From positions 868,001 through 932,000 of the forward strand of contig OZ176060.1 of the NCBI GenBank assembly GCA_964247055.1: 64,000 nt of DNA, in the 5' to 3' direction. The notes beneath the pieces are model-generated. The model saw nothing but the letters and a program-made list of their open reading frames with translations. It did not search any database and was not told where the DNA came from. The position numbers and the translations under genes were made by a program. Below are positions 17,701 to 50,970 of this stretch, piece by piece. This DNA comes from Paragordius varius (taxonomy: Eukaryota > Animalia > Nematomorpha). The first letter of the stretch is position 1; every line of letters begins with the position of its first letter.

Positions 17701-20090
17701 ATATATAAAATTTCAAAAATATTCATTCCATCTTTAAAAAGAATTATTTATAAAACTCAAAAATAAAAAGGTTTTTTTTGACTGGTAAATTACCAAATAA
17801 TAGATATTTTACAAAATTTCAAAAATATTTATTCTATCTTTAAGAAGAATTATTTATAAAACTCGAAAATAAAAAGTTTTTTTGATTGATAAAAATTGCC
17901 AAATAATAGCTAATATAAAATCTCACAAATTTTCAAAAATATTCATTCCATCTTTCAAATTTAAAAGAAGAATTATCTAATACAAAGAAATATTCTAGAA
18001 AATTAAAATCATTTCTTGTTAAATTAAGAATAAATTTTTCTTTTAAAAAGGCTCTTTTAAATGCAAAATGTTTTGATTTTTTAATAAAAAGGTTTTTTTG
18101 ATTGGAAAATTACCAAATAATAGATATTTTACAAAATTTCAAAAATTAATTCCATCTTTAAGAAGAATTAGTTATAAAACTCGAAAATAAAAAAGTTTTT
18201 TTTGATTGATGAAAATTACCAAATAATAATTAATGTGAAATCTCATAATTTTAATAATAAATTCCATTTTTTAAATCTAAAAGAAAAATTATCTAAAACA
18301 AAGAAATACTCTAGAAAATTAAATCAATTCTTGTTAAATGAATAAATAATTTTTTTAAAAAATATGAAAACGCTTTGATTTATTAATAATAAGTTTTTTT
18401 TGACTGGAAAATCTACCAAATAATAGTTTATATGAAATCTCATAATTTTTAAAATATTTATTCCATCTTTTATATTTAAAAGAAGAATTATCTAAAACAA
18501 AAAGGTCTTCAAAAATTAAAATCAATTCTTGTTAAATGAATAATTTTTTTAAAAATGCTCTTTTAAATGCAAAACGTTTTGATTGATTGGGAAAAAGTTT
18601 TTTTTGATTGGAAAATTACTAAATAATAGATATTTTACAAAATTTCAAAAATAAATTCCATCTTTAAGAAGAATTATTTATAAAACTCGAAAAAAAAAAG
18701 TTTTTTGACTGGAAAATTACCAAATAATAGCTAATATGAAATCTTATACAACTTTCAAAATATGCCCTCTTTTAAAATTAAAAGAATTATTCTTATCTAA
18801 AACAAAAAGTCTAGAAAATTAAAATCTATTCTTTTTAGATGAATATTTCTTTTTAAATGCTCTAATGATTAATAAAAAGTTTTTTGATTAAAAAAAATTT
18901 TTTTTGACTGGAAAATTACCAAATAATAGATATTTTACAAAATTTTAAAAATAAATTCCATCTTTAAGAAGAATTATTTATAAAATCCAAAAATAAAAAT
19001 TATTCTGATCTAAATCATTTCTTGTTGAAAAAAATAATTTTTTTTTTAAAATTTCAAAAATAAATTTCATCTTTTAAATTTTCAAAAATATTAATTAAAG
19101 ATTTCAAAACTAAAATCAATTCTTGTTAAATCATTTCTTGTTGAATAAATAAATTTTTTTAAAATTGCTCTCTTAAATGCAAAACGTTTTGATTGATTGG
19201 GAAAAGGTTTAGTTTTTTTGATTGATGAAAATCTACCAAATAATAGATATTTTAAGAAATTTCAAAAATATCTAAAAATTTAGAAGTATCTATAATAAAA
19301 ATCTAGAAAATTATTTCATTACTTGTTAAATTAATAATTTATATAAAAAAATTCAAAAATAATCTTTTAAAACTCGAAAATAAAAAGGTCTACTCTAAAA
19401 CTAAAATCATTTTTTGCTTTTAATAAATATTTCTTTTAAAAATGCTCTTTTAAATGCAAAACGTTTTGATTGATTGGGAAAAAAGATTTTTTTTTGATTG
19501 GAAAATTTCCAAATAATAGATATTTTACAAAATTTCAAAATAAATTCTATCTTTAAGAAAGAACTCTCATAAACTAAAATCATTTCTTGTTAAACTAATA
19601 ATTTTTCTTTTAAAAATGATTTTTTAAATGCAAAACGTTTTGATTTATTAATAAAAAGGATTTTGACTAGAAAATTACCAAATAATAGTTAATATGAAAT
19701 CTCAAAATTTTGAAAAATATTTATTCCATCTTTTAAATTTAAAAGAAGAATTATCTAAAACAAAAAGGTCTCGAAAACTAAAATCAATTTTTGTTAAATA
19801 AATAATTTTTTTTTAAAAATGCTCTTTTAAATGAAAATTACTAAATAATAGATATTTTACAAAATTTCAAAAATTAGTTCCATCTTTTAAATTTAAAAGA
19901 ACAATTATCTAAAACAAAAAGGTTTTTTAAATATTAAAATCATTTCTTGTTAAATAAATAAATAAATATATCTTTTAAGATTTTTTTTAAAATCAAAACG
20001 TTTTGATTGATTGGGAAAAATTGTTTTTTTTTGACTGTAAAATTACCAAATAATAGCTAATATAAAATCTCATAATTTTCAAAATAATAT
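14746..20090 (+). repeat. Satellite family A, block 3
   Basis: Same A modules, same orientation. Confidence 0.95.
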
Positions 20091-20871
20091 TCTAATTTTT
20101 TATCTTAAAAAACCTATATTATATTTGAGGGTAAATTTGAATTGTTTAAGGGTAAATTTAAATTCTAATGGTATATAAATCAAGTATATAGAAATTTTTA
20201 TTTTTTAAAAATATATTAAAATATAGGTAATTTTTTATCTTAAAAAACATATTTTTTATATTTGAGGGTGAATTTGAATTGTTTAAGGGTGAATTTGAAT
20301 TGTAATGGTATATAAATTAAGTATATAGAAATTTTTATTTTATAAAATATATTAAAATATAGGTAATTTTTAATCTTAAAAAACATATATTTTATTTGAG
20401 GGTGAATTTGAATTGTTCAAGGGTAATTTTGAATTGTAATGGTATATAAATCAAGTAAATAGAAATTTTTATTTATAAAAATATATTAAAATATAGGTAA
20501 TTTTTTATCTTAAAAAACATATTTTTTATATTTGAGGGTAAATTTGAATTGTAATGGCATATTTTATTATTTTTTCAGTATTCAAAATTTTTATTTTTAT
20601 AAAAATATATTAAAATATAGGTATTTTTTTCATCTTAAAAAACATATATTTTATTTGAGGGTGAATTTGAATTGTTTAAGGGTGAATTTGAATTGTAATG
20701 GTATATAAATCAAGTATATAGAAATTTTTATTTATAAAAATATATTCTAAAATATATTAAAATATAGGTAATTTTTTATCTTAAAAAACATATATTTTAT
20801 TTGAGGGTGAATTTGAACTCTAATGGTATATAAATTTTTATTTAAAACAAAATTTTTATTTATAAAAATAT

Positions 20872-23409
20872 CACTAGACAACAAATTTTTTGGCCAAATG
20901 AGATTATTTTCGTTTTAGTTAGCTAATAGTATACTTATACCAAAAATTTAAAAAAAAATGGGCTACTTGAAAGGATTTTTCAAAAAATAAATTTTTCTGT
21001 TTTTTGAAAAAACGGTAATTTAACAAGTTAATCAAAGATATCAACTACAAAACTGCTTTATATGTAGACAGATTATATATCAATCGATAGAGAGTAATCG
21101 ATTATATATAAAAAATATAAAGATAAATGATTTTAATTAATATGCTTATAAAATTTCAATTTAAAATAGCAAAAATTAACGTTTTTTTGTGAGCGAAAAT
21201 CTTAAACTGTAAAGTTTGCTAAAAAATTACGGTAAATAACAATTTTTAACTAATAAACATTGCTCTTTCAGAATAAAGAAATATTTTTTCTGTATAAAAA
21301 GTTTTTGTCGCTTTTATGAGGTGATTTTCATTTGCAGTGATGTGTTAAATTTTATTAAAATATATACAAAAATACTTTCCTAGTGCATTAATGTATAAGT
21401 TTTTAAATCAAATCGTTGATACGAGCGAGATCCCGCAAGCAGGTATTTATCCTTATAATATAGAACGCAACTGCAAAAATGATCCGAACAATTTTTGTAT
21501 GTGCTGCGGAAGAACAATATTAATGGTTTAATGGAAGAAATTAACATAAATTATAATCCCGAGGACTGGGCATTATTATAAGATTCCAACATGGTTAAAA
21601 AAATATTCATAATATTAGGTAAGCTTGAAATTCATATTGGTGAATATACAGGATAACAAGTATCTTTTAATAATTGGGTATGCCAGGGCTGCCAAAGAAT
21701 CATATGAAATTTTCAAAAAAATTATAGAGTGTGTGAATTATACAAGGGATAATTGGAACGTTATTGGTGACTTTAAAGTAGCTAAAAATTAACATTTAGG
21801 TTTTATTGATGATTGCCGGCTTGCAGGGTGGGTTACCTAAGTACCACTGTATATTTTGTCTGTGGAACAGCAGGGAGCGTGACTTACACTATCGAACGAA
21901 AGACTGGGGTTCCAGAGTCTTCACAATTGGATTGCATAATTGTGTGAGGGAACCCCTCATTGATATAAAGAAAGTGTACATCCCCTGCCTACATATAGCA
22001 CTGGGACTCTTTTCAATATTTATTAAAAACTTGGATAAAACATCCAAATCGTTTATTTATTTTCAATCTAAACATAAACTCACCAAGGCTAAGGCAGAGG
22101 CCGGAGTGGTGACGGGGCCGGTGATGAAAAAAATATTTACAGATACATATTTTTTTGAACTACTTAATGAGAAAAATAGGCTAGCATTTGATGCTATGCA
22201 AAAATTTGATTCTGGGTTCTTAGGTTTGTATATTATAATATGTATAGGATCTTACAAATCGCCACGATATCTAGAGTTGGCAGAAAATTTAATAAGAAGT
22301 TTTCAGGATATGGGTAACTCAATATAGGTTGTCAAATGTCCATGAAAATGCACATGGTGGATGAGCACCTCAAGAATTTTCCCTTTAACAATATATCTGA
22401 CCAAATCGGGGAAAGAATGCATCAGGACCTGAAGATATTTGAAAAAAGATATAATAATAAAAATACTATTAATATGATATCTGATTTTATTTGGAATCAT
22501 ACATAATTTTTATATATTTATATGCCACCTATATGTATTTACAATAAATAAATGTATTGAAATTGTATTTATTTTGAAATCGATTTATTTAGCGTAAATA
22601 AATTGCTCTGTACAATATGTGATAAAAATCTTAATAATATGTTTCTCTGTTTAGTTTATTGAATATAATCTATAGATATCCATCAATTTATTTGAACAAT
22701 AAATAGGTTTGAGTTTTCAGATTTGTGTAAATTAAAAATTTCTTCACATAAATAGGATACCATAATCAATAAGTTTACGTAATATATGTGATTAATCCAT
22801 TTTCTATGATAATTACTCGGCCTATATATAAATGTTAATTTTACCATATCCATCTCGTTCAAATTTAAAAAAATATAAATATACACAAGGAAAATAGATT
22901 TTGCATAAAATTGGATTGGGTTCTCCGTTACTGATGTACTTAAATTGGTTCATAACTTTAAGTTAAAATTAAAATTGAACAAAAAAATATATATATTCTA
23001 AAAGCTGATGCTTTAATCTATAAATTAAATACGTTATCATTACACTGAGACATATTTACAAACGTTTGTGATGAGCTTGTAAAAAAGCAAAAAATTTAAC
23101 TATTATTCTCTTAATTCAAGATTTTTAATAAAGGCTTTCATAATATATTTATATGTAAAAGATAGAGTTTTTTATGCTTTATTTAATGATATAAGTTTCA
23201 TATTTTTTAATATTTTTCTCTCTAATAAAATATTTTATAAAGCGTCCGATTTATTGATTATTTTAAAATTTACAAAATATTAATTTTCTCAAAATCTATG
23301 CAAGCCAGGTCAAAAATTTTTTCGGATTCGGATTCTGAACAGTATACTTGATTAAATTTCCGATTTTTACAAATGGCTGTTAAAAAAAGTCAAAATTTGT
23401 TGTCTAGTG
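20872..23409 (+). mobile_element. CMC superfamily (Chapaev-3-like) DNA transposon, internally deleted, 2538 bp
   Basis: Perfect 18-bp TIRs CACTAGACAACAAATTTT (20872-20889) / AAAATTTGTTGTCTAGTG (23392-23409). TAT on both flanks (20869-20871, 23410-23412; candidate 3-bp TSD in an AT-rich context). Subterminal palindrome AGTATACT at both ends (20928-20935, 23341-23348). Contains a DDE transposase remnant. CAC...GTG termini are typical of Chapaev/CACTA. Confidence 0.9.
21391..22506 (+). pseudogene. Chapaev-3-type DDE transposase, spliced, defective
   Basis: Predicted exons 21391-21442, 21464-21593, 21619-21777, 21800-22223, 22248-22313, 22328-22506. Motifs: N-terminal CKNDPNNFCMCCG; GLMEE..YNPEDWALL*DS (D1 21582); WNVIGDFK (D2 21769); GLQGG.PKY.C.FC.W.SR; P.LHIALGL; MGCQMSMKMH; SDQIGERMHQD (E 22411); end ISDFIWNHT*. 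Lesions are a frameshifting deletion junction at ~21512 and an in-frame TAA at 21579-21581. Confidence 0.88.
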
Positions 23410-23656
23410 TATTTAAATATAGTAATTTTTTATCTTTTGAAAAAACATATATTTTATTTTAGGGTGAATTTGAATTGTTCAAGGGTGAATTTAAATTAAG
23501 TATATATAGAAATTTTTATTTGTAAATCAATCAAATATGATTTTTACATTGTAATCAAAATGTTTTTTATAAAAGAAATAAAAAAACTATGGTTGTTTTT
23601 CGAAAAAAAAATATATTTTTACATTTTGTCCGTATAAATTCGCAGTTTTCACTGTA

Positions 23657-25195
23657 TTTGTTTTCTAAAACAAAACACTTTATTCTTGATAAATCTCTAT
23701 AGATAGAAATTTCAAATTTCAAGTAAAAACTCGAAAAAAATAAGTAAAAGGAAATAATCTAATTAAAATTGATAATAAAAAATAATATTATTCTCTAAAA
23801 AAACACATTTTTTTGGATAAATCTCTTTTACTTAAAAGCTTAACAATATTAAAGTGAGTATATACTTAATTACTCGAGATTTTAATAGAGAAAGGTTTTT
23901 TAATCTAAAATATTCCTGTCCTTTGAAATTCCAAATGAAAACTCAAAAATTTATAAATAAGTAAAAGGAAACAATATAATTGAAATTGATTATACAGTAA
24001 AAATTTAAATTCTACGGAAAAAAAACATAAAAAATATAAAAACAAATATTTTATTCAAAAGACAACCATACTTTTAAAATTTTTATTTTTATATATATAT
24101 ATATACCATTTACAGTTCAAATTCACCCTTGAACAATTAAAATTTACCCTAAAAAGAAATTATGTGTTTTAGAAATAAATATAACTTATTAATTATATAT
24201 GAAATATATCTTTATGGCGCATAGTTTATTATTTTTTCAGTATTATATTATATTTTTTAAAAATATATATTAAAATATAGGTAATTTTTTATCTTAAAAA
24301 CAAATATTTTATTTGAGGATGAATTTGAATTGTTCAAGGGTGAATTTGAATTGTAATGGTATATAAATCAATTATATAGAAATTTTTATTGATAAATTAT
24401 TCAAATAAGTATTTTACATTGTAATCAAATGTTTTTTATAGAAGAAATTAAAAAAGTATGGTTGTTTTTTAAAAAAATATATTTTTTACATTTTGTCCGT
24501 ATAAATTCACAGTTTTCACTGTATTGGTTTTTTAAAACAAAACACTTTTTTTTTCTTAATAAATCTCTATAGATAGAATTTTCAAATTATAAAACTCGAA
24601 AAAATTGAGTAAAAGGAAATAATCTAGAAATTAAAATTGTTAATAATAATATTCTTTTTTAAAATAAAGTTTTTTTTTATAAATATTCTTTTACTTAAAA
24701 GCTTATTTATATTAAAGCGAGTATATACTTAATTACTCAAGTATTTTAAAAGCAAGGTTTTTTTAATTATTCATCTGGCTACCTTGCTCGAGTTAAAGCG
24801 AGATATAGTAATTTCAAGTAAAAACTCGAAAAAATAAAAAAATCTAATTAAAATTCATAATAATAATAATATTATTCTTTAAAATAAACACTTTATTTTT
24901 TAAAATAAGCACTTTATTTTTTAAAAAATCTCTTTTACTTAAAAGCTTCTTAATATTAAAGCGAGTATATTCTAAAATGTGTTTTAAAAAAAAGAAAAAG
25001 GTTTTTTACCTCTAAAAGCTTATTAAATTACAGCGAAATATATTTCAAATAAAAAACTCGAAAATAAAAAGAGTAAAATAAAATAATCTAATTAAAATTG
25101 ATAATAAAAATAATATTATACTTTAAATAAAGTTTTTTTTTATAAATTTTCTTATACCTAAAAGCTTTTTAATATTACAGCGAGTATATACTCTA
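23657..25195 (+). repeat. Satellite family B block (contains C-MITE 23995-24521)
   Basis: B modules as above. Confidence 0.9.
23995..24521. mobile_element. C-MITE, 527 bp
   Basis: TA|CAGTAAAAATTTAAATTCTACGG ... GTCCGTATAAATTCACAGTTTTCACTG|TA. Confidence 0.8.
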
Positions 25196-31170: not shown

Positions 31171-33202
31171 TCATAATCACTTGATTTTATACATTCATTC
31201 ATTGATCACCTGATTTTTTACATGTATTATTTAGGAATTTGCCTGCAATGGAATGATTGAAAAAACAACCCCTTAATTTTTGAATAAAATTTTAAATGAA
31301 ATATATTTTTAAAAGACATATTTGTGGTAATTTTTTCATTATAAAATTCATTCATTGATCACCTGATTTTTTCTAGGAATTTGCCTGTAATGGAACTGTG
31401 AATAAACATTCCTTAGTGTTTCAATAAAATTTTAAATAAAATATAATTTTTAAGGACTTATTTTTGATATTTTTTACCTTTGTTTCATTCATTCATTGAT
31501 CACCTGATTTTTGTTGAAATATCTAGGAATTTGCCTGTAATGGTGATTGAACACCCCTTAGTTTTGGAATAAAATTTTAAAAATATGTTAAGACATATTT
31601 GTGGTAATCTTTTTATCATTCATTCATTGATCACCTGATTTTTTTAGGAATTTGCCTGTAATGGAACTGTGATTGAAATCATTACTAAATTATATAAATT
31701 AAAGATTGTCGCATTTATATTGGCTCTAAAAAAATAGTTTTAGGAAAATTCTAATTTTGGGTTTTTTTCACGATCACATGATTTTATACATTCATTCATT
31801 AATCACCTGATTTTTTAGGAATTTGCCTGTAATGGAACTGTGATTGAACACCCCGAATTCGGGGAAGTCCTTCAACTCCAAGGCGATCAACGAAAGAATG
31901 TCAGCGGTTTCTTGGTTAAATCGGGAATAGCTAAACAGGAAGCACTTAAAATACACGGGTTTTAGCACACATTCATTAATCACCTGATTACCAACAGCTG
32001 TTTTATACACCTCTTTTTTTCAGCAAAACTTTTGTAAACTTGCTTCTTTTTTGGGATTAATCGGGAAATGCTAAGCCAGAAGTACTTAAAATACATGAAG
32101 TACACATTCATTAATCACCTGATTACCAACAGCTGTTCTTACACGTATTTATGTTCAACTATAGTTTTGTAAAACTCCCTTTCGGGATTAATCGGGAATA
32201 GCTAAGCAAGAAGTACTTGAAATATTCGTTTTTAGTTAATGTTCATTCATTCACACACTCAAGATCACCTGATTTTACTTTTTTGCAATTATTTAAAATT
32301 TCGCATAAACTTTTAAAGCTATAATATACATAAGTTTAAATGCAGATATTTACAAACTTAGGATCACCTGATTATTAATAGCAGCAGCTGTTTTTAACTA
32401 AAATCCAAAATTTATACCTACATAAATTCAAATTTTAAACACAAATCTCCGTTAAATCAAATTGCTATCTACGCATTCATTCACTGAATAACTCAAGATC
32501 ACCTGATTCTTTTTTCAATACTTTGTGTTTAAATTTTATCCTCTTTGGATCAAATATTTATTTTCGTTAACCACTAATCTATTATATAAGTTTTTGCGCA
32601 CTACATTCAATCTCACAATCATAAAATCACCTGGTTTTATAAAACTTAGTTTTAAAACATTAATTAAGATTGCGCACATTCATTCATTAAACACCTGTTT
32701 TACCTTTCCCTCATATAATAACCATGTTAGCGCTTATTTATTCAGTCGAATTATAAAACATATAATTAATGATAACTTTAATACATTCATTCATTAAACA
32801 CCTGTTTTACTAATTTATATGATAACCATGTTAACGCTCATTCATTCAGTCAGATGATAAAACATATGATTAATGATAACTTTTATAAATTCATTCATAA
32901 AACACCTGTTTTACCTTTACCTTATATAAAAACCATGTTAGCGCTCATTCATTCAGTCAGATGATAAAATATATGATTAATGATAACCTTATATATGATA
33001 TACTAATCTGGGCCCGCACTAATTCACGATAATAACTTGATAAAATCTTAGGTTAATTTCTAAAAAAAATATAATTTTTATATTATTTTTTTATTTTTAT
33101 ATTTTCTTTTAATATTTATATATTATATTTTACCTTAATGTTAAATTTTTTGGTTAATTACTTAAATTTGGTGTTTATCGCACATTCATTGATCAGCTGT
33201 TT
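31171..33202 (+). repeat. Family D block 2: eIF1-exon-derived tandem array
   Basis: Four partial copies of acceptor plus exon start (AG|GAATTTGCCTGYAATGG at 31235, 31377, 31527, 31648), the full exon at 31819, two copies of the exon 3' half (~32053, ~32184), then increasingly diverged CATTCATT...TCACCTG...CAGCTGTT derivatives. Confidence 0.88.
31819..31965 (+). pseudogene. EIF1: Isolated terminal coding exon of translation initiation factor eIF1 (SUI1), open and intact, 48 aa plus stop
   Basis: TTTTTTAG| acceptor (AG at 31817-18), then EFACNGTVIEHPEFGEVLQLQGDQRKNVSGFLVKSGIAKQEALKIHGF-TAG. Colinear with the animal eIF1 C-terminus (human KFACNGTVIEHPEYGEVIQLQGDQRKNICQFLVEIGLAKDDQLKVHGF*). I saw no upstream eIF1 exons in the window. 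Missed by the ORF track (no ATG, <60 aa). Confidence 0.95.
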
Positions 33203-36580: not shown

Positions 36581-37734
36581 CTAAAATATTCCTGTGGCTT
36601 TTAAATGTAAAACTCGAAAAAATTGAGTAAAAGGAAATAATCTAGAAATTGAAATTGATAATAAATATAATATTTTTCTTTAAAATAAAGACTTTTTTCT
36701 TAAAAATCTCTTTTACTTAAAAGCTTCTTATTATTACAGCGAGTATATACTACATTACTCAAATATTTTAAGAAAAAGAAAGAAAGAAATATGATTTTAA
36801 TCAAAAATATTCATGTGGCTTACTTGTTCGAGTTAGGGCGAAAAATAAAAATTTCAACTAAAAACTCGAAAAAAGTAAGTAAAAGGAAATAATCTAGAAA
36901 TTGAAATTTATAATAAAAATTATATTATTCTTTAATATAAAAACTTTTTTCTTGATAAATCTCTTTTTTAGAAGCTAATCATTATTACAGCGAGTATATA
37001 CTACATTTCTCAAGAATTTTAAGACAAAAATTCGAAAAAAAGTAGTAAAAGGAAAGAATCTAATTAAAATTGATAATAATAATAATAAAAAAATCAATAT
37101 TAAAGCGAGTATATACTACATTAATCAAGTATTTTAAAAGCAAGGTTTTTTTTTAATCTAAAATATTCATCTGGCTTACTTGCTCGAGTCAGAACGAGAA
37201 ATAAAGTTTTTTCTTAATAAAACTCGAAAAAATTAAGTAAAAGCAAAAAATCTAATTGAAATTGTTAATAATAATATTATTATTCTCTAAAACAAAACAC
37301 TTTTTTTCTTGATAAATCTCTTTTTAAAAGCTTATATTATTACAGCGAGTCTAAACCTAACTCAAGTATTTTAAAAACAAAGACTTTTATTCTAATAGAA
37401 ATTTTAAAATTAAAAAGTAAAAGGAAACAATCTAGAAATTGAAATTGATAATAATGATATAATTCTCTAAAACAAAAACTAATTCTTAATAAATCTCTTT
37501 TACTTAAAAGCTTCTTAATATTAAAGCGAGTATATACTACATTACTCAAGTATTTTAAGACAAAAACTCGAAAAAAAGAAGTAAAAGAATAATCTAATTA
37601 AAATTGTTAATTATAATATTATTCTCTGAAATAAACACTTTTTTATTAATAAATCTCTTTTACTTAAAAGCTTAATATTACAGCGAGTATTTACTACATT
37701 ACTCAAGTATTTTAAGAGAAAAAATTAATAAGGT
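36581..37734 (+). repeat. Satellite family B block
   Basis: B modules. Ends abruptly at the eIF1 fragment. Confidence 0.9.
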
Positions 37735-39125
37735 ACCCCGAATTCGGGGAAGTCCTTCAACTCCAAGGCGATCAACGAAAGAATGTCAGCGGTTTTCTGG
37801 TTAAATCGGGAATAGCTAAACAGGAAGCACTTAAAATACACGGCTTTTAGCACACATTCATTAATCACCTCATTTCAAACAGCTGTTATTACCTCTTTTT
37901 TTCAACAAACTCTTGTAAAACTTACTTTTTGGTTAAATCGGGAATAGCTAAACAGGAAGCACTTAAAATACACGGCTTTTAGCACACATTCATTAATCAC
38001 CTGATCACTAACAGCTGTTATTACCTATTTACCAATTCAACTAACTTTTGTAAAACCTACTTTTTGGGATTATTCGGGAATTGCTAAACAGGAAGGACTT
38101 AAAATACACGGGTTTTAGCACACATTCATTAATCACCTGATTTCAAACAGCTGTTATTACCTCTTTTTTTCAACAAACTCTTGTAAAACTTACTTTTTGG
38201 TTAAATCTGGAATAGCTAAACAGGAAGCACTTAAAATACACGGGTTTAAGCACACATACATTAATCACCTGATTATCAACAGCTGTTATTACCTCTTTTT
38301 TTCAACTAAAACTTTTGTAAAACTTACTTTTTGGGATTAATCGGAAATAGATAAACCAGAAATACTTAAAATGCACGAGTTTTAGCACACATTATTTTAT
38401 AAACTCAAGATCATCTGATTTAACTTAATTGCAATTATTTAAAATCCTAAATCTTAAAATACATGGGTGGGTTTAAAATGCACATATTTACAAACTTAAG
38501 ATCACTTGATTATTAATAGCAGCAGCTGTTTTAACTCAATAATCAAATATTCAAAACTCCTTATCTTTCCTACATAAATTCAAATTTTAAACACAATTCT
38601 CCTTTAAACTCAAATTGCTTTTTACGCATTCATTCATTGAATAACTCAAGATCACCTGATTTTTTTATAACCTTTTTCTCTGTTTAAATTTTTATCTTCT
38701 TTGGATAAAATTTTAATTTTCGTTAACCAGTAATCTATTATATAAGTTTTTGCGCACTACATTCAAACTCATAATCATAAAATCACCTGGTTTTATAAAA
38801 CTTTGTTTTTAAACATAAATTATGAAAGCGCACATTCATTCATAAAACACCTGTTTTACCTTTACTTATATAATAACCTCAAGTTTGCGCTCATTCATTC
38901 AGTCAGATGATAAAACAATGATTAATGATAACTTTTAAACATAAGATATACTAATCTAGCACGCATTAATTCACTAACTTGATAAATTGATAAATTAGGT
39001 TAATTTCCAAAAAAAATTTATTATTATTTATTGTTTTTATTATTTTTCATTTTACCTTAATGTTTAAATTTTTTGGTTAATTACTTAAATTTTGTGTTTA
39101 TCGCACATTCATTGATCAGCTGTTT
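37735..39125 (+). repeat. Family D block 3: ~134-bp repeats of the eIF1 exon 3' half plus 3' UTR, then diverged derivatives
   Basis: (GGTTAAA/GGGATTAA)TCGGGAATAGCTAAACAGGAAGCACTTAAAATACACGGSTTTTAGCACACATTCATTAATCACCTGA-type units at ~37931, 38066, 38199, 38333. 38400-39125 is colinear with 32250-33202. Confidence 0.88.
37737..37850 (+). pseudogene. EIF1: 5'-truncated second copy of the eIF1 terminal exon
   Basis: PEFGEVLQLQGDQRKNVSGFLVKSGIAKQEALKIHGF-TAG, the same peptide as 31852-31965. Joined directly to B satellite at ~37735. Confidence 0.93.
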
Positions 39126-50261: not shown

Positions 50262-50970
50262 CGGTAAAAATTTAAATTCTACGGAAAAAACGTAAAAATA
50301 TAAAGACAAATATTTTAATCTAAAATACAACCATACTTTTAAAACTTTTATTTATATATATATATACCATTTACAGTTCAAATTCACCCTTGAACAATTC
50401 AAATTTTACCCTAAAAAGAATTTAAAATTTACCCTAAAAAGAAATTATGTGTTTTAGAAACAAATATAACTTAATAATTTTATATGAAATATATCTGTAT
50501 GGCATAGTTTATTATTTTTTCAGTATAAAACAAAATTTTTATTTATAAAAATATTTTAAAATATAGGTAATTTTTTATCTTAAAAAACATATATATTTGA
50601 TTAGAGGGTAAATATGAATTGTTCAAGGGTAAATTTGAATTCTAATGATATATAAAATTTTTTCAGTATTAAAAATTTTTATTTTTAAAAATATATTAAA
50701 ATATAGGTAATTTTTTAATCTTAAAAAACATATTTTTTATATTTGAGGGTGAATTTGAATTGTTCAAGGGTAAATTTGAATTTAAGGGTGAATTTGAATT
50801 GTAATGGTATATAAATATAAGTATATAGAAATTTTTATTGGTAAATCAATCAAATATATATTTTTACATTGTAATCAAATTTTTATAGGAAAAATTTAAA
50901 AAGTATGGTTGTTTTTTGAAAAAAAAATATATTTTTACATTTTGTCCGTATAAATTCACAGTTTTTACTG
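50262..50970. mobile_element. C-MITE, 709 bp
   Basis: TA|CGGTAAAAATTTAAATTCTACGG ... GTTTTTACTG|TA. Confidence 0.8.

Follow-up and report, generated by a model that had tools for sequence, protein, structure and literature searches.

The transposon described here lies at positions 20872–23409 of a 64,000-nucleotide (nt) stretch of Paragordius varius DNA (GCA_964247055.1, contig OZ176060.1, positions 868,001–932,000; 'the window', whose own coordinates are used throughout), and its transposase coding region is interrupted by short segments that begin with GT, end with AG and are almost certainly introns of a once-active element. The evidence points to a decayed Chapaev3-type copy, and we consider it quite probable that its active ancestor carried spliced GT–AG introns of about 22–25 nt, three of which (introns 1, 2 and 4 below) would likely have been gained. 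Segments of this size are shorter than the introns of nearly all animals.

In a three-frame translation of the region the transposase-like frame shifts several times. When 13 full-length relatives were compared with the window by tblastn, they gave five colinear blocks in three frames, and the block boundaries coincide exactly with four segments of the forward strand: intron 1 (21594–21618, 25 nt, phase 0, GTTAAA...TTAG), intron 2 (21778–21799, 22 nt, phase 0, GTAGCT...TTAG), intron 3 (22224–22247, 24 nt, GTTTGT...ATAG, phase 1 within the Gly codon of FLG) and a remnant of intron 4 (22314–22327, 14 nt, GTAACTCAATATAG, phase 1). With a slash marking each junction, removal of intron 1 gives EDWALL-stop-DSNM/VSLKFILV, which fits DEWRLFIDSSMSSLKAILL without gaps, and removal of intron 2 joins GDFK/VLLMIAGLQ, gapless against ADFKVIGLLTGMQ and colinear with all 13 relatives. 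At intron 3, FLG/SYKSPRY stands against FLGNTKSADY, and in 13/13 relatives an 8-residue gap lies exactly over LYIIICIG, the residues that the segment would otherwise encode. Removal of the intron 4 remnant repairs the last frameshift, QDMG/CQMSMKMH aligning gapless with AIGARMSLKIH. With the four segments taken out, the region yields a 302-codon product (an X placed at its one stop) that matches a profile built from 25 relatives as one domain over profile positions 233–537 (337.8 bits, E 6.7e-105). None of the junctions shows a gap in this match, and the pieces scored one by one add up to 284 bits.

An earlier sequence-only reading had claimed tiny spliceosomal introns here, and the coordinates, lengths, GT..AG ends and 5′ hexamers of the four segments that it listed are all as it gave them, as is the gapless colinearity restored by removing introns 1–3. 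Its fourth candidate, an in-frame segment of 21 nt at 21443–21463 (GTATTT...ATAG, forward strand), falls within an unconserved N-terminal extension that has no counterpart in the relatives. Features found beyond that reading are the fifth segment at 22314–22327, a stop codon at 21579–21581, the loss of profile positions 21–232 and the ends of the transposon. Accidental resemblance to introns was gauged by inserting randomly chosen stretches of non-coding DNA from the element itself at arbitrary points of the joined coding sequence; just 0.14–0.32% of such inserts could be described as GT..AG, a probability of about 0.002 for each segment, and as all four segments can be so described, chance is excluded. 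If each junction is granted some 20 other possible placements in the protein alignment, the chance becomes about 0.04 per junction and about 3e-6 for the four. The sequence-only reading had also drawn attention to a TAA(T/C)A motif, likened to a branch point, and to a terminal TAG, and both do occur in the four segments that it listed (21443–21463, 21594–21618, 21778–21799 and 22224–22247). They carry little weight as splicing signals, since among GT..AG segments of similar size in the window 14% contain the motif and 20% end in TAG by chance, and since the pattern is absent from the variant forms found in other copies.

Such copies were sought in public DNA reads by comparing assembly contigs from three DNA runs (three organism labels) and from run X11, whose RNA label is a guess, over 20950–22950. 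In run X1 this interval is covered by many DNA contigs of 80–100% likeness, and the 135 contigs placed range in likeness from 99+% down to below 90%, a spread that marks the family as multi-copy and of mixed age. Intron 1 is 24 nt long, having one A fewer, in two X1 contigs (depth 1080/1268) and in the sole covering contig of run X5 (depth 9.2/9.2), and the exons on either side of it align in these contigs without insertions or deletions. The 24-nt form contains in-frame TAA and TAG, and a one-base change of length would be harmless here only if the segment were removed. Intron 2 is retained in an X1 contig spanning 21421–21801. For intron 4, one X1 contig (depth 800/2358) has ATTAAATTA inserted after 22320, resulting in a 23-nt intron, GTAACTCATTAAATTAAATATAG (GTAACTC+ATTAAATTA+AATATAG); the 14-nt segment in the window is thus what a 9-nt deletion has left, and not a record-short intron. 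The intron 3 site in a paralogous contig reads TTT TTA G/GTATGTATATTTTTATTATAAG. The 23-nt and 24-nt variants of introns 4 and 1 also run from GT to AG, and the intron 3 variant starts with GT.

No contig at 80% likeness among the DNA runs compared skips any of the segments precisely, so the check for segment-free copies that the sequence-only reading had suggested gives no hint that intronless copies exist or that the segments are excised from DNA. Among the variants listed, length changes that are not a multiple of three occur inside the segments only (25 versus 24 nt). The 19 exonic differences listed include none at codon position 2 and 12 at position 3, and 11 of them (58%) are synonymous against 19% expected (P 2e-4); as this codon-position bias runs through exons in three genomic frames, the lineage diversified under protein selection with the segments present. 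Colinearity, GT–AG ends, purifying selection on the exons and a length variation limited to the segments together lend strong support to the proposal of tiny spliceosomal introns, as far as DNA sequence can speak to it. Pieces 99–100% identical to the element are found in runs under six organism labels from six studies (X1, X5, X7 and others), and these near-identical pieces may reflect sibling species, parasite DNA in host samples or recent horizontal transfer.

The copy in the window, judged from its coding content, is certainly dead and unable to make a transposase. Its first coding stretch starts from an ATG at 21391 and runs to 21512 (NCKNDPNNFCMCCGR), corresponding to profile positions 4–20 and to the N-termini of the library proteins P0064, P0082 and P0112; it closes with the first CxxC of what is probably an N-terminal zinc finger, the Chapa domain, and the copy retains nothing more of that domain. 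At the internal deletion junction (21511–21513) profile coverage jumps from 20 to 233, with positions 21–232 (about 212 residues) gone. An X1 contig matches the window up to 21511 and then runs on with the unlike sequence AAATGGATATTTT, and its divergence at exactly this point implies that longer family copies exist; deletion derivatives of the family are also visible as joints in contigs, for example from 21288 to 22158. The catalytic half resumes with the exon piece NNINGLMEE...DSNM (21513–21593), which holds the first catalytic D (21582–21584) of the DDE triad and, at 21579–21581, an in-frame TAA aligned with the I of a conserved LFIDSS, the residue before that D. The exon VSLKF...GDFK follows (21619–21777; second catalytic D at 21769–21771; profile 261–313, E 7e-16 alone), then an exon with the C(2)C motif (HCIFC, 21848–21859) and LH (21989–21994) at 21800–22223 (profile 314–479, E 3e-46), the exon SYKSPRYLELAENLIRSFQDM(G) at 22248–22313, recognized from the relatives' alignments and a profile match, and the last exon at 22328–22506 (H(4)H motif HMVDEH, 22351–22368; catalytic E, 22411–22413; stop TAA, 22504–22506; profile 476–537, E 5e-20), all on the forward strand. 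The verdict on the copy follows from the deletion of about 212 codons, the TAA beside the first catalytic D and the truncation of intron 4, which has lost 9 of 23 nt. The 'gene' of the sequence-only reading therefore stands as a transposase coding region, and falls as an intact gene. At most this copy could be moved in trans by an intact one, which its perfect inverted ends make conceivable.

As to the origin of the introns, which the sequence-only reading had put down to gain or shrinkage, gain is favoured at introns 1, 2 and 4, where the nearest relatives are intronless, and intron 3 may have gone either way. At the DNA level the relatives L001 (P0064), L002–L004 (P0003) and L011 (P0106) are single uninterrupted open reading frames (ORFs) over all four junctions, and in L007, L008 and L009 the frame continues unbroken through the sites of introns 1 and 2. 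A quick maximum-likelihood tree groups the window with P0069 and P0106 (Shimodaira–Hasegawa-like approximate likelihood ratio test (SH-aLRT) 97; the branches there are long). Because the nearest relatives have uninterrupted ORFs, introns 1, 2 and 4 were most likely gained in this lineage, a conclusion that we hold provisionally. That they arose de novo inside a transposase already resident in the horsehair-worm lineage is a possibility that we advance tentatively, giving it a little under an even chance. At intron 3, the same Gly codon is split in the same phase in the relative L009, from an unrelated metagenome assembly, by a GT..AG intron of 57 nt (2054–2110) that contains a branch-like TACTAAT; this makes the in-frame 24-nt segment of the window more credible as an intron. 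L009 is not the sister of the window element, and its closest neighbour in the tree, its sister P0048, shows no gap at the intron 3 site; the intron may be old and have been lost in places, or it may have been gained in parallel at one site.

Three further observations concern these relatives. As many of them end after FLG(N), a widespread intron at that place was tested for and dropped: only L009 has an intron there, and L007 and L008 have in-frame stops (L007 ~1576–1578, FLGN; L008 ~1638–1640, VLGTR) two to three codons past the conserved LG and beside the intron 3 site, which explains why several library proteins end at FLG(N). In one long-read assembly, L005:2993–2995 and L006:2975–2977 mark places where profile positions 218–311 are missing, both catalytic aspartates included, and the right breakpoint falls exactly between K311 and V312, the intron 2 site of the window; this may be a coincidence or the trace of a former exon lost. 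The protosplice sequence AAG/GT is present in the intronless L001 at the intron 2 site only, and from this one sequence we draw no conclusion.

Several points weigh against spliced introns in the active ancestor and against their recent gain. The 5′ splice sites are alike in GT alone, the branch-like motif is weak, no polypyrimidine tract was found in the segments, and run X11 gave no contigs over 20950–22950. With the final AG taken as acceptor, intron 3 of the paralogue would measure 22 nt, but its contig runs no further than that point. The variants stem from short, unphased contigs, and 40 of 178 are listed. The window offers no multi-exon host gene with which the micro-introns could be compared. 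Gain is a provisional conclusion, as the relatives were drawn from assemblies of metagenomes or reads and compared in a quick tree with long branches.

Other explanations were considered. The segments could be random small insertions with accidental GT and AG ends in a plain decayed pseudogene, whose family never needed splicing; the window copy, with its deletion and stop, is certainly dead, it lies in an AT-rich region, and 5′ sites that share GT alone would suit such an origin. This explanation is nevertheless close to refuted and scarcely credible, as a random insert takes the GT..AG form in 0.14–0.32% of trials and yet 4/4 segments have it, as all of them belong to a narrow size class of 22–25 nt, and as they are common to other copies and to runs under other organism labels, with exons under purifying selection. 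Alternatively, the segments might be real insertions that are retained in RNA, the family being made up of dead non-autonomous copies amplified by a separate intronless master element. The existence of several deletion derivatives fits this, as does the fact that no intact copy or transcript was seen among the contigs compared (X11 having yielded none), but the listed exonic differences, 58% of them synonymous and none at codon position 2, span three genomic frames and show that the lineage diversified under selection for the protein with the segments in place, and no segment-free contig was found at 80% likeness; we regard this explanation as very unlikely. Removal of the segments from DNA in the manner of internal eliminated sequences, or their skipping in translation, has nothing positive in its favour and next to no probability, given that GT..AG ends are the signature of the spliceosome, that no DNA contig has the joined form, and that L009 has an ordinary intron with a branch-like site at the very place of intron 3.

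A different question is whether genuine introns were inherited at ordinary size and then shrunk in this host, instead of being newly gained. The 57-nt intron of L009, at the exact position and phase of intron 3, speaks for shrinkage, as do two published Chapaev3 families with two exons (PMC4079192). Against this, in P0106, P0069 and every other relative read at the DNA level nothing interrupts the frame at introns 1 and 2, nor in most cases at introns 3 and 4, and P0048, the sister of L009, is gapless at the intron 3 site. Shrinkage of inherited introns is thus unlikely, although it retains a real share of the probability. The reading that we prefer, a decayed copy of an element with spliced micro-introns, would run as follows: the transposase gene of the active ancestor would have been split by U2-type GT–AG introns of about 22–25 nt, which the host spliceosome would have had to remove to yield the DDE enzyme; introns 1, 2 and 4 would have been gained after the family entered this lineage, with intron 3 older or a parallel gain; and a Chapaev3-type transposon would have inserted, with a 3-bp duplication, into a short-repeat unit of an AT-rich region.

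Assignment to Chapaev3 is supported by both the protein and the ends of the element. A single 173-residue ORF (21806–22324) finds 1,121 relatives at E<=0.001 in a representative protein library, the best at 43% identity and many of them 500–620 residues long. The hallmarks of Chapaev and Chapaev3 are 5′-CAC...GTG-3′ ends, a 3–4-bp target-site duplication (Chapaev3 inserts between A and T and duplicates TWA) and a transposase of about 556 residues that has the motifs C(2)C, LH and H(4)H; it is usually encoded in one exon, and two Chapaev3 families have two (PMC4079192). The element in the window, a 2,538-bp internally deleted transposon on the forward strand, has the same CAC...GTG ends and 3-bp duplication between A and T as the published Chapaev3 elements Garfield, Merrow and Conan, and the same three motifs around its DDE residues (PMC4079192), so that the label 'Chapaev-type' of the sequence-only reading is borne out; its relatives' transposases are about 550 residues long, and a zinc-finger domain at the N-terminus, similar to that of RAG1, may be held in common. 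It differs in the internal deletion of the window copy, in having at least four introns of 22–25 nt in the catalytic half where published transposases are mostly single-exon (PMC4079192), and in a duplication that is TAT and not the TWA consensus (TAA/TTA), a single insertion that says little on family preference.

The relationship to RAG1 is more distant. The N-terminal profile of the relatives matches the RAG1 N-terminal chain 21wb_A weakly (E 0.011), and a protein atlas has RAG1-domain clusters among distant look-alikes; both fit the published link between the Chapa domain and RAG1, in a study that places Chapaev near Transib (PMC4411706). Compared with RAG1 and Transib (PMC4411706), the family has the layout D...D...C(2)C...H(4)H...E and perhaps a distantly similar Chapa domain, but is neither Transib nor RAG1 proper, and its target-site duplication here is 3 bp. 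Pfam searches with full-length relatives returned weak zf-AD matches only and no RAG1 domain, and searches with four ORF pieces from the window returned nothing useful. Transib was considered in place of Chapaev and dropped, as the set of motifs, the terminal CAC...GTG and the 3-bp duplication all agree with Chapaev3; one classification puts Chapaev3 inside Transib (PMC4411706).

The ends were located by an anchoring search on CAC/GTG; a generic inverted-repeat search around the element gave output dominated by the surrounding repeat family. The 5′ terminal inverted repeat, CACTAGACAACAAATTTT (20872–20889, forward strand), starts with CAC, and 18/18 of its bases are complementary to the 3′ repeat (23392–23409, reverse strand), which ends with GTG. 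A TAT preceded by A (20869–20871) is repeated after the right end as a TAT followed by T (23410–23412), giving A-TAT / element / TAT-T, and just one TAT is present where paralogous units of the surrounding repeat family lack the insertion (50530 and 55253 among them). The transposon sits within one unit of this pervasive short repeat (20700–20871 and 23410–23600), as ...TTTATAAAAATAT/TTAAATATAGGTAATTTTTTATC...GAGGGTGAATTTGAA, and the other repeat units that give empty sites are at 50530, 55253, 55520, 60238 and 62644. The G+C content of the window is 17% overall and 23% in both 2-kb bins spanning 20001–24000, and a blastn search found no second copy of the element within the 64 kb. At 20992–21074, contigs of runs X1, X5 and X7 skip 83 nt and read ATA instead, which represents either an extra 83-nt piece in the 5′ non-coding part of the window copy or a deletion common to the other copies.

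With regard to the host-specific intron architecture conjectured in the sequence-only reading, no multi-exon host gene was found in the 64-kb window, where the only host coding sequence found was the last exon of eIF1/SUI1 (ending in GTVIEHPEFGEVLQLQGDQRKNVSGFLVKSGIAKQEALKIHGF and a stop). That exon is present in two copies, 31819–31962 and 37716–37847, with decayed partial copies nearby and no upstream eIF1 exons in the window. For the genome of the horsehair worm Gordionus, the published description gives 26.9% G+C and 63.8% repeats, mostly DNA transposons, and does not mention introns; the word 'intron' was not found in the horsehair-worm genome literature searched by that term. Among animals, introns shorter than 30 nt have been published for dicyemids and myxobolid myxozoans only, where they are read as shrunken ancestral introns of compact genomes (PMC13644364). 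The segments described here resemble them in GT–AG ends, lengths of about 22–27 nt, weak splice motifs, A-rich interiors and the lack of a polypyrimidine tract (PMC13644364). In contrast, the dicyemid and myxobolid introns belong to compact genomes mostly poor in transposable elements and are proven by RNA (PMC13644364), whereas those proposed here from DNA sequence lie within a transposon in a repeat-rich genome.

A transposase with introns of less than 30 nt, set against uninterrupted relatives, suggests that introns were gained recently in a genome rich in repeats, and the many copies of the family that can be dated allow the birth, length drift and decay of micro-introns to be measured. 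ORF-based methods and standard repeat and gene annotation would call such elements broken though some copies may be intact, and a minimum intron length of 10–15 nt is needed when this genome is annotated. If de novo gain is the true history, this genome creates new introns of about 23 nt and does not merely shrink old ones, and a series of transposon copies of differing ages could be used to date and follow how ultra-short introns arise. An element with such introns would be tied to hosts that can splice them out, which would limit the horizontal spread for which its family is otherwise known.

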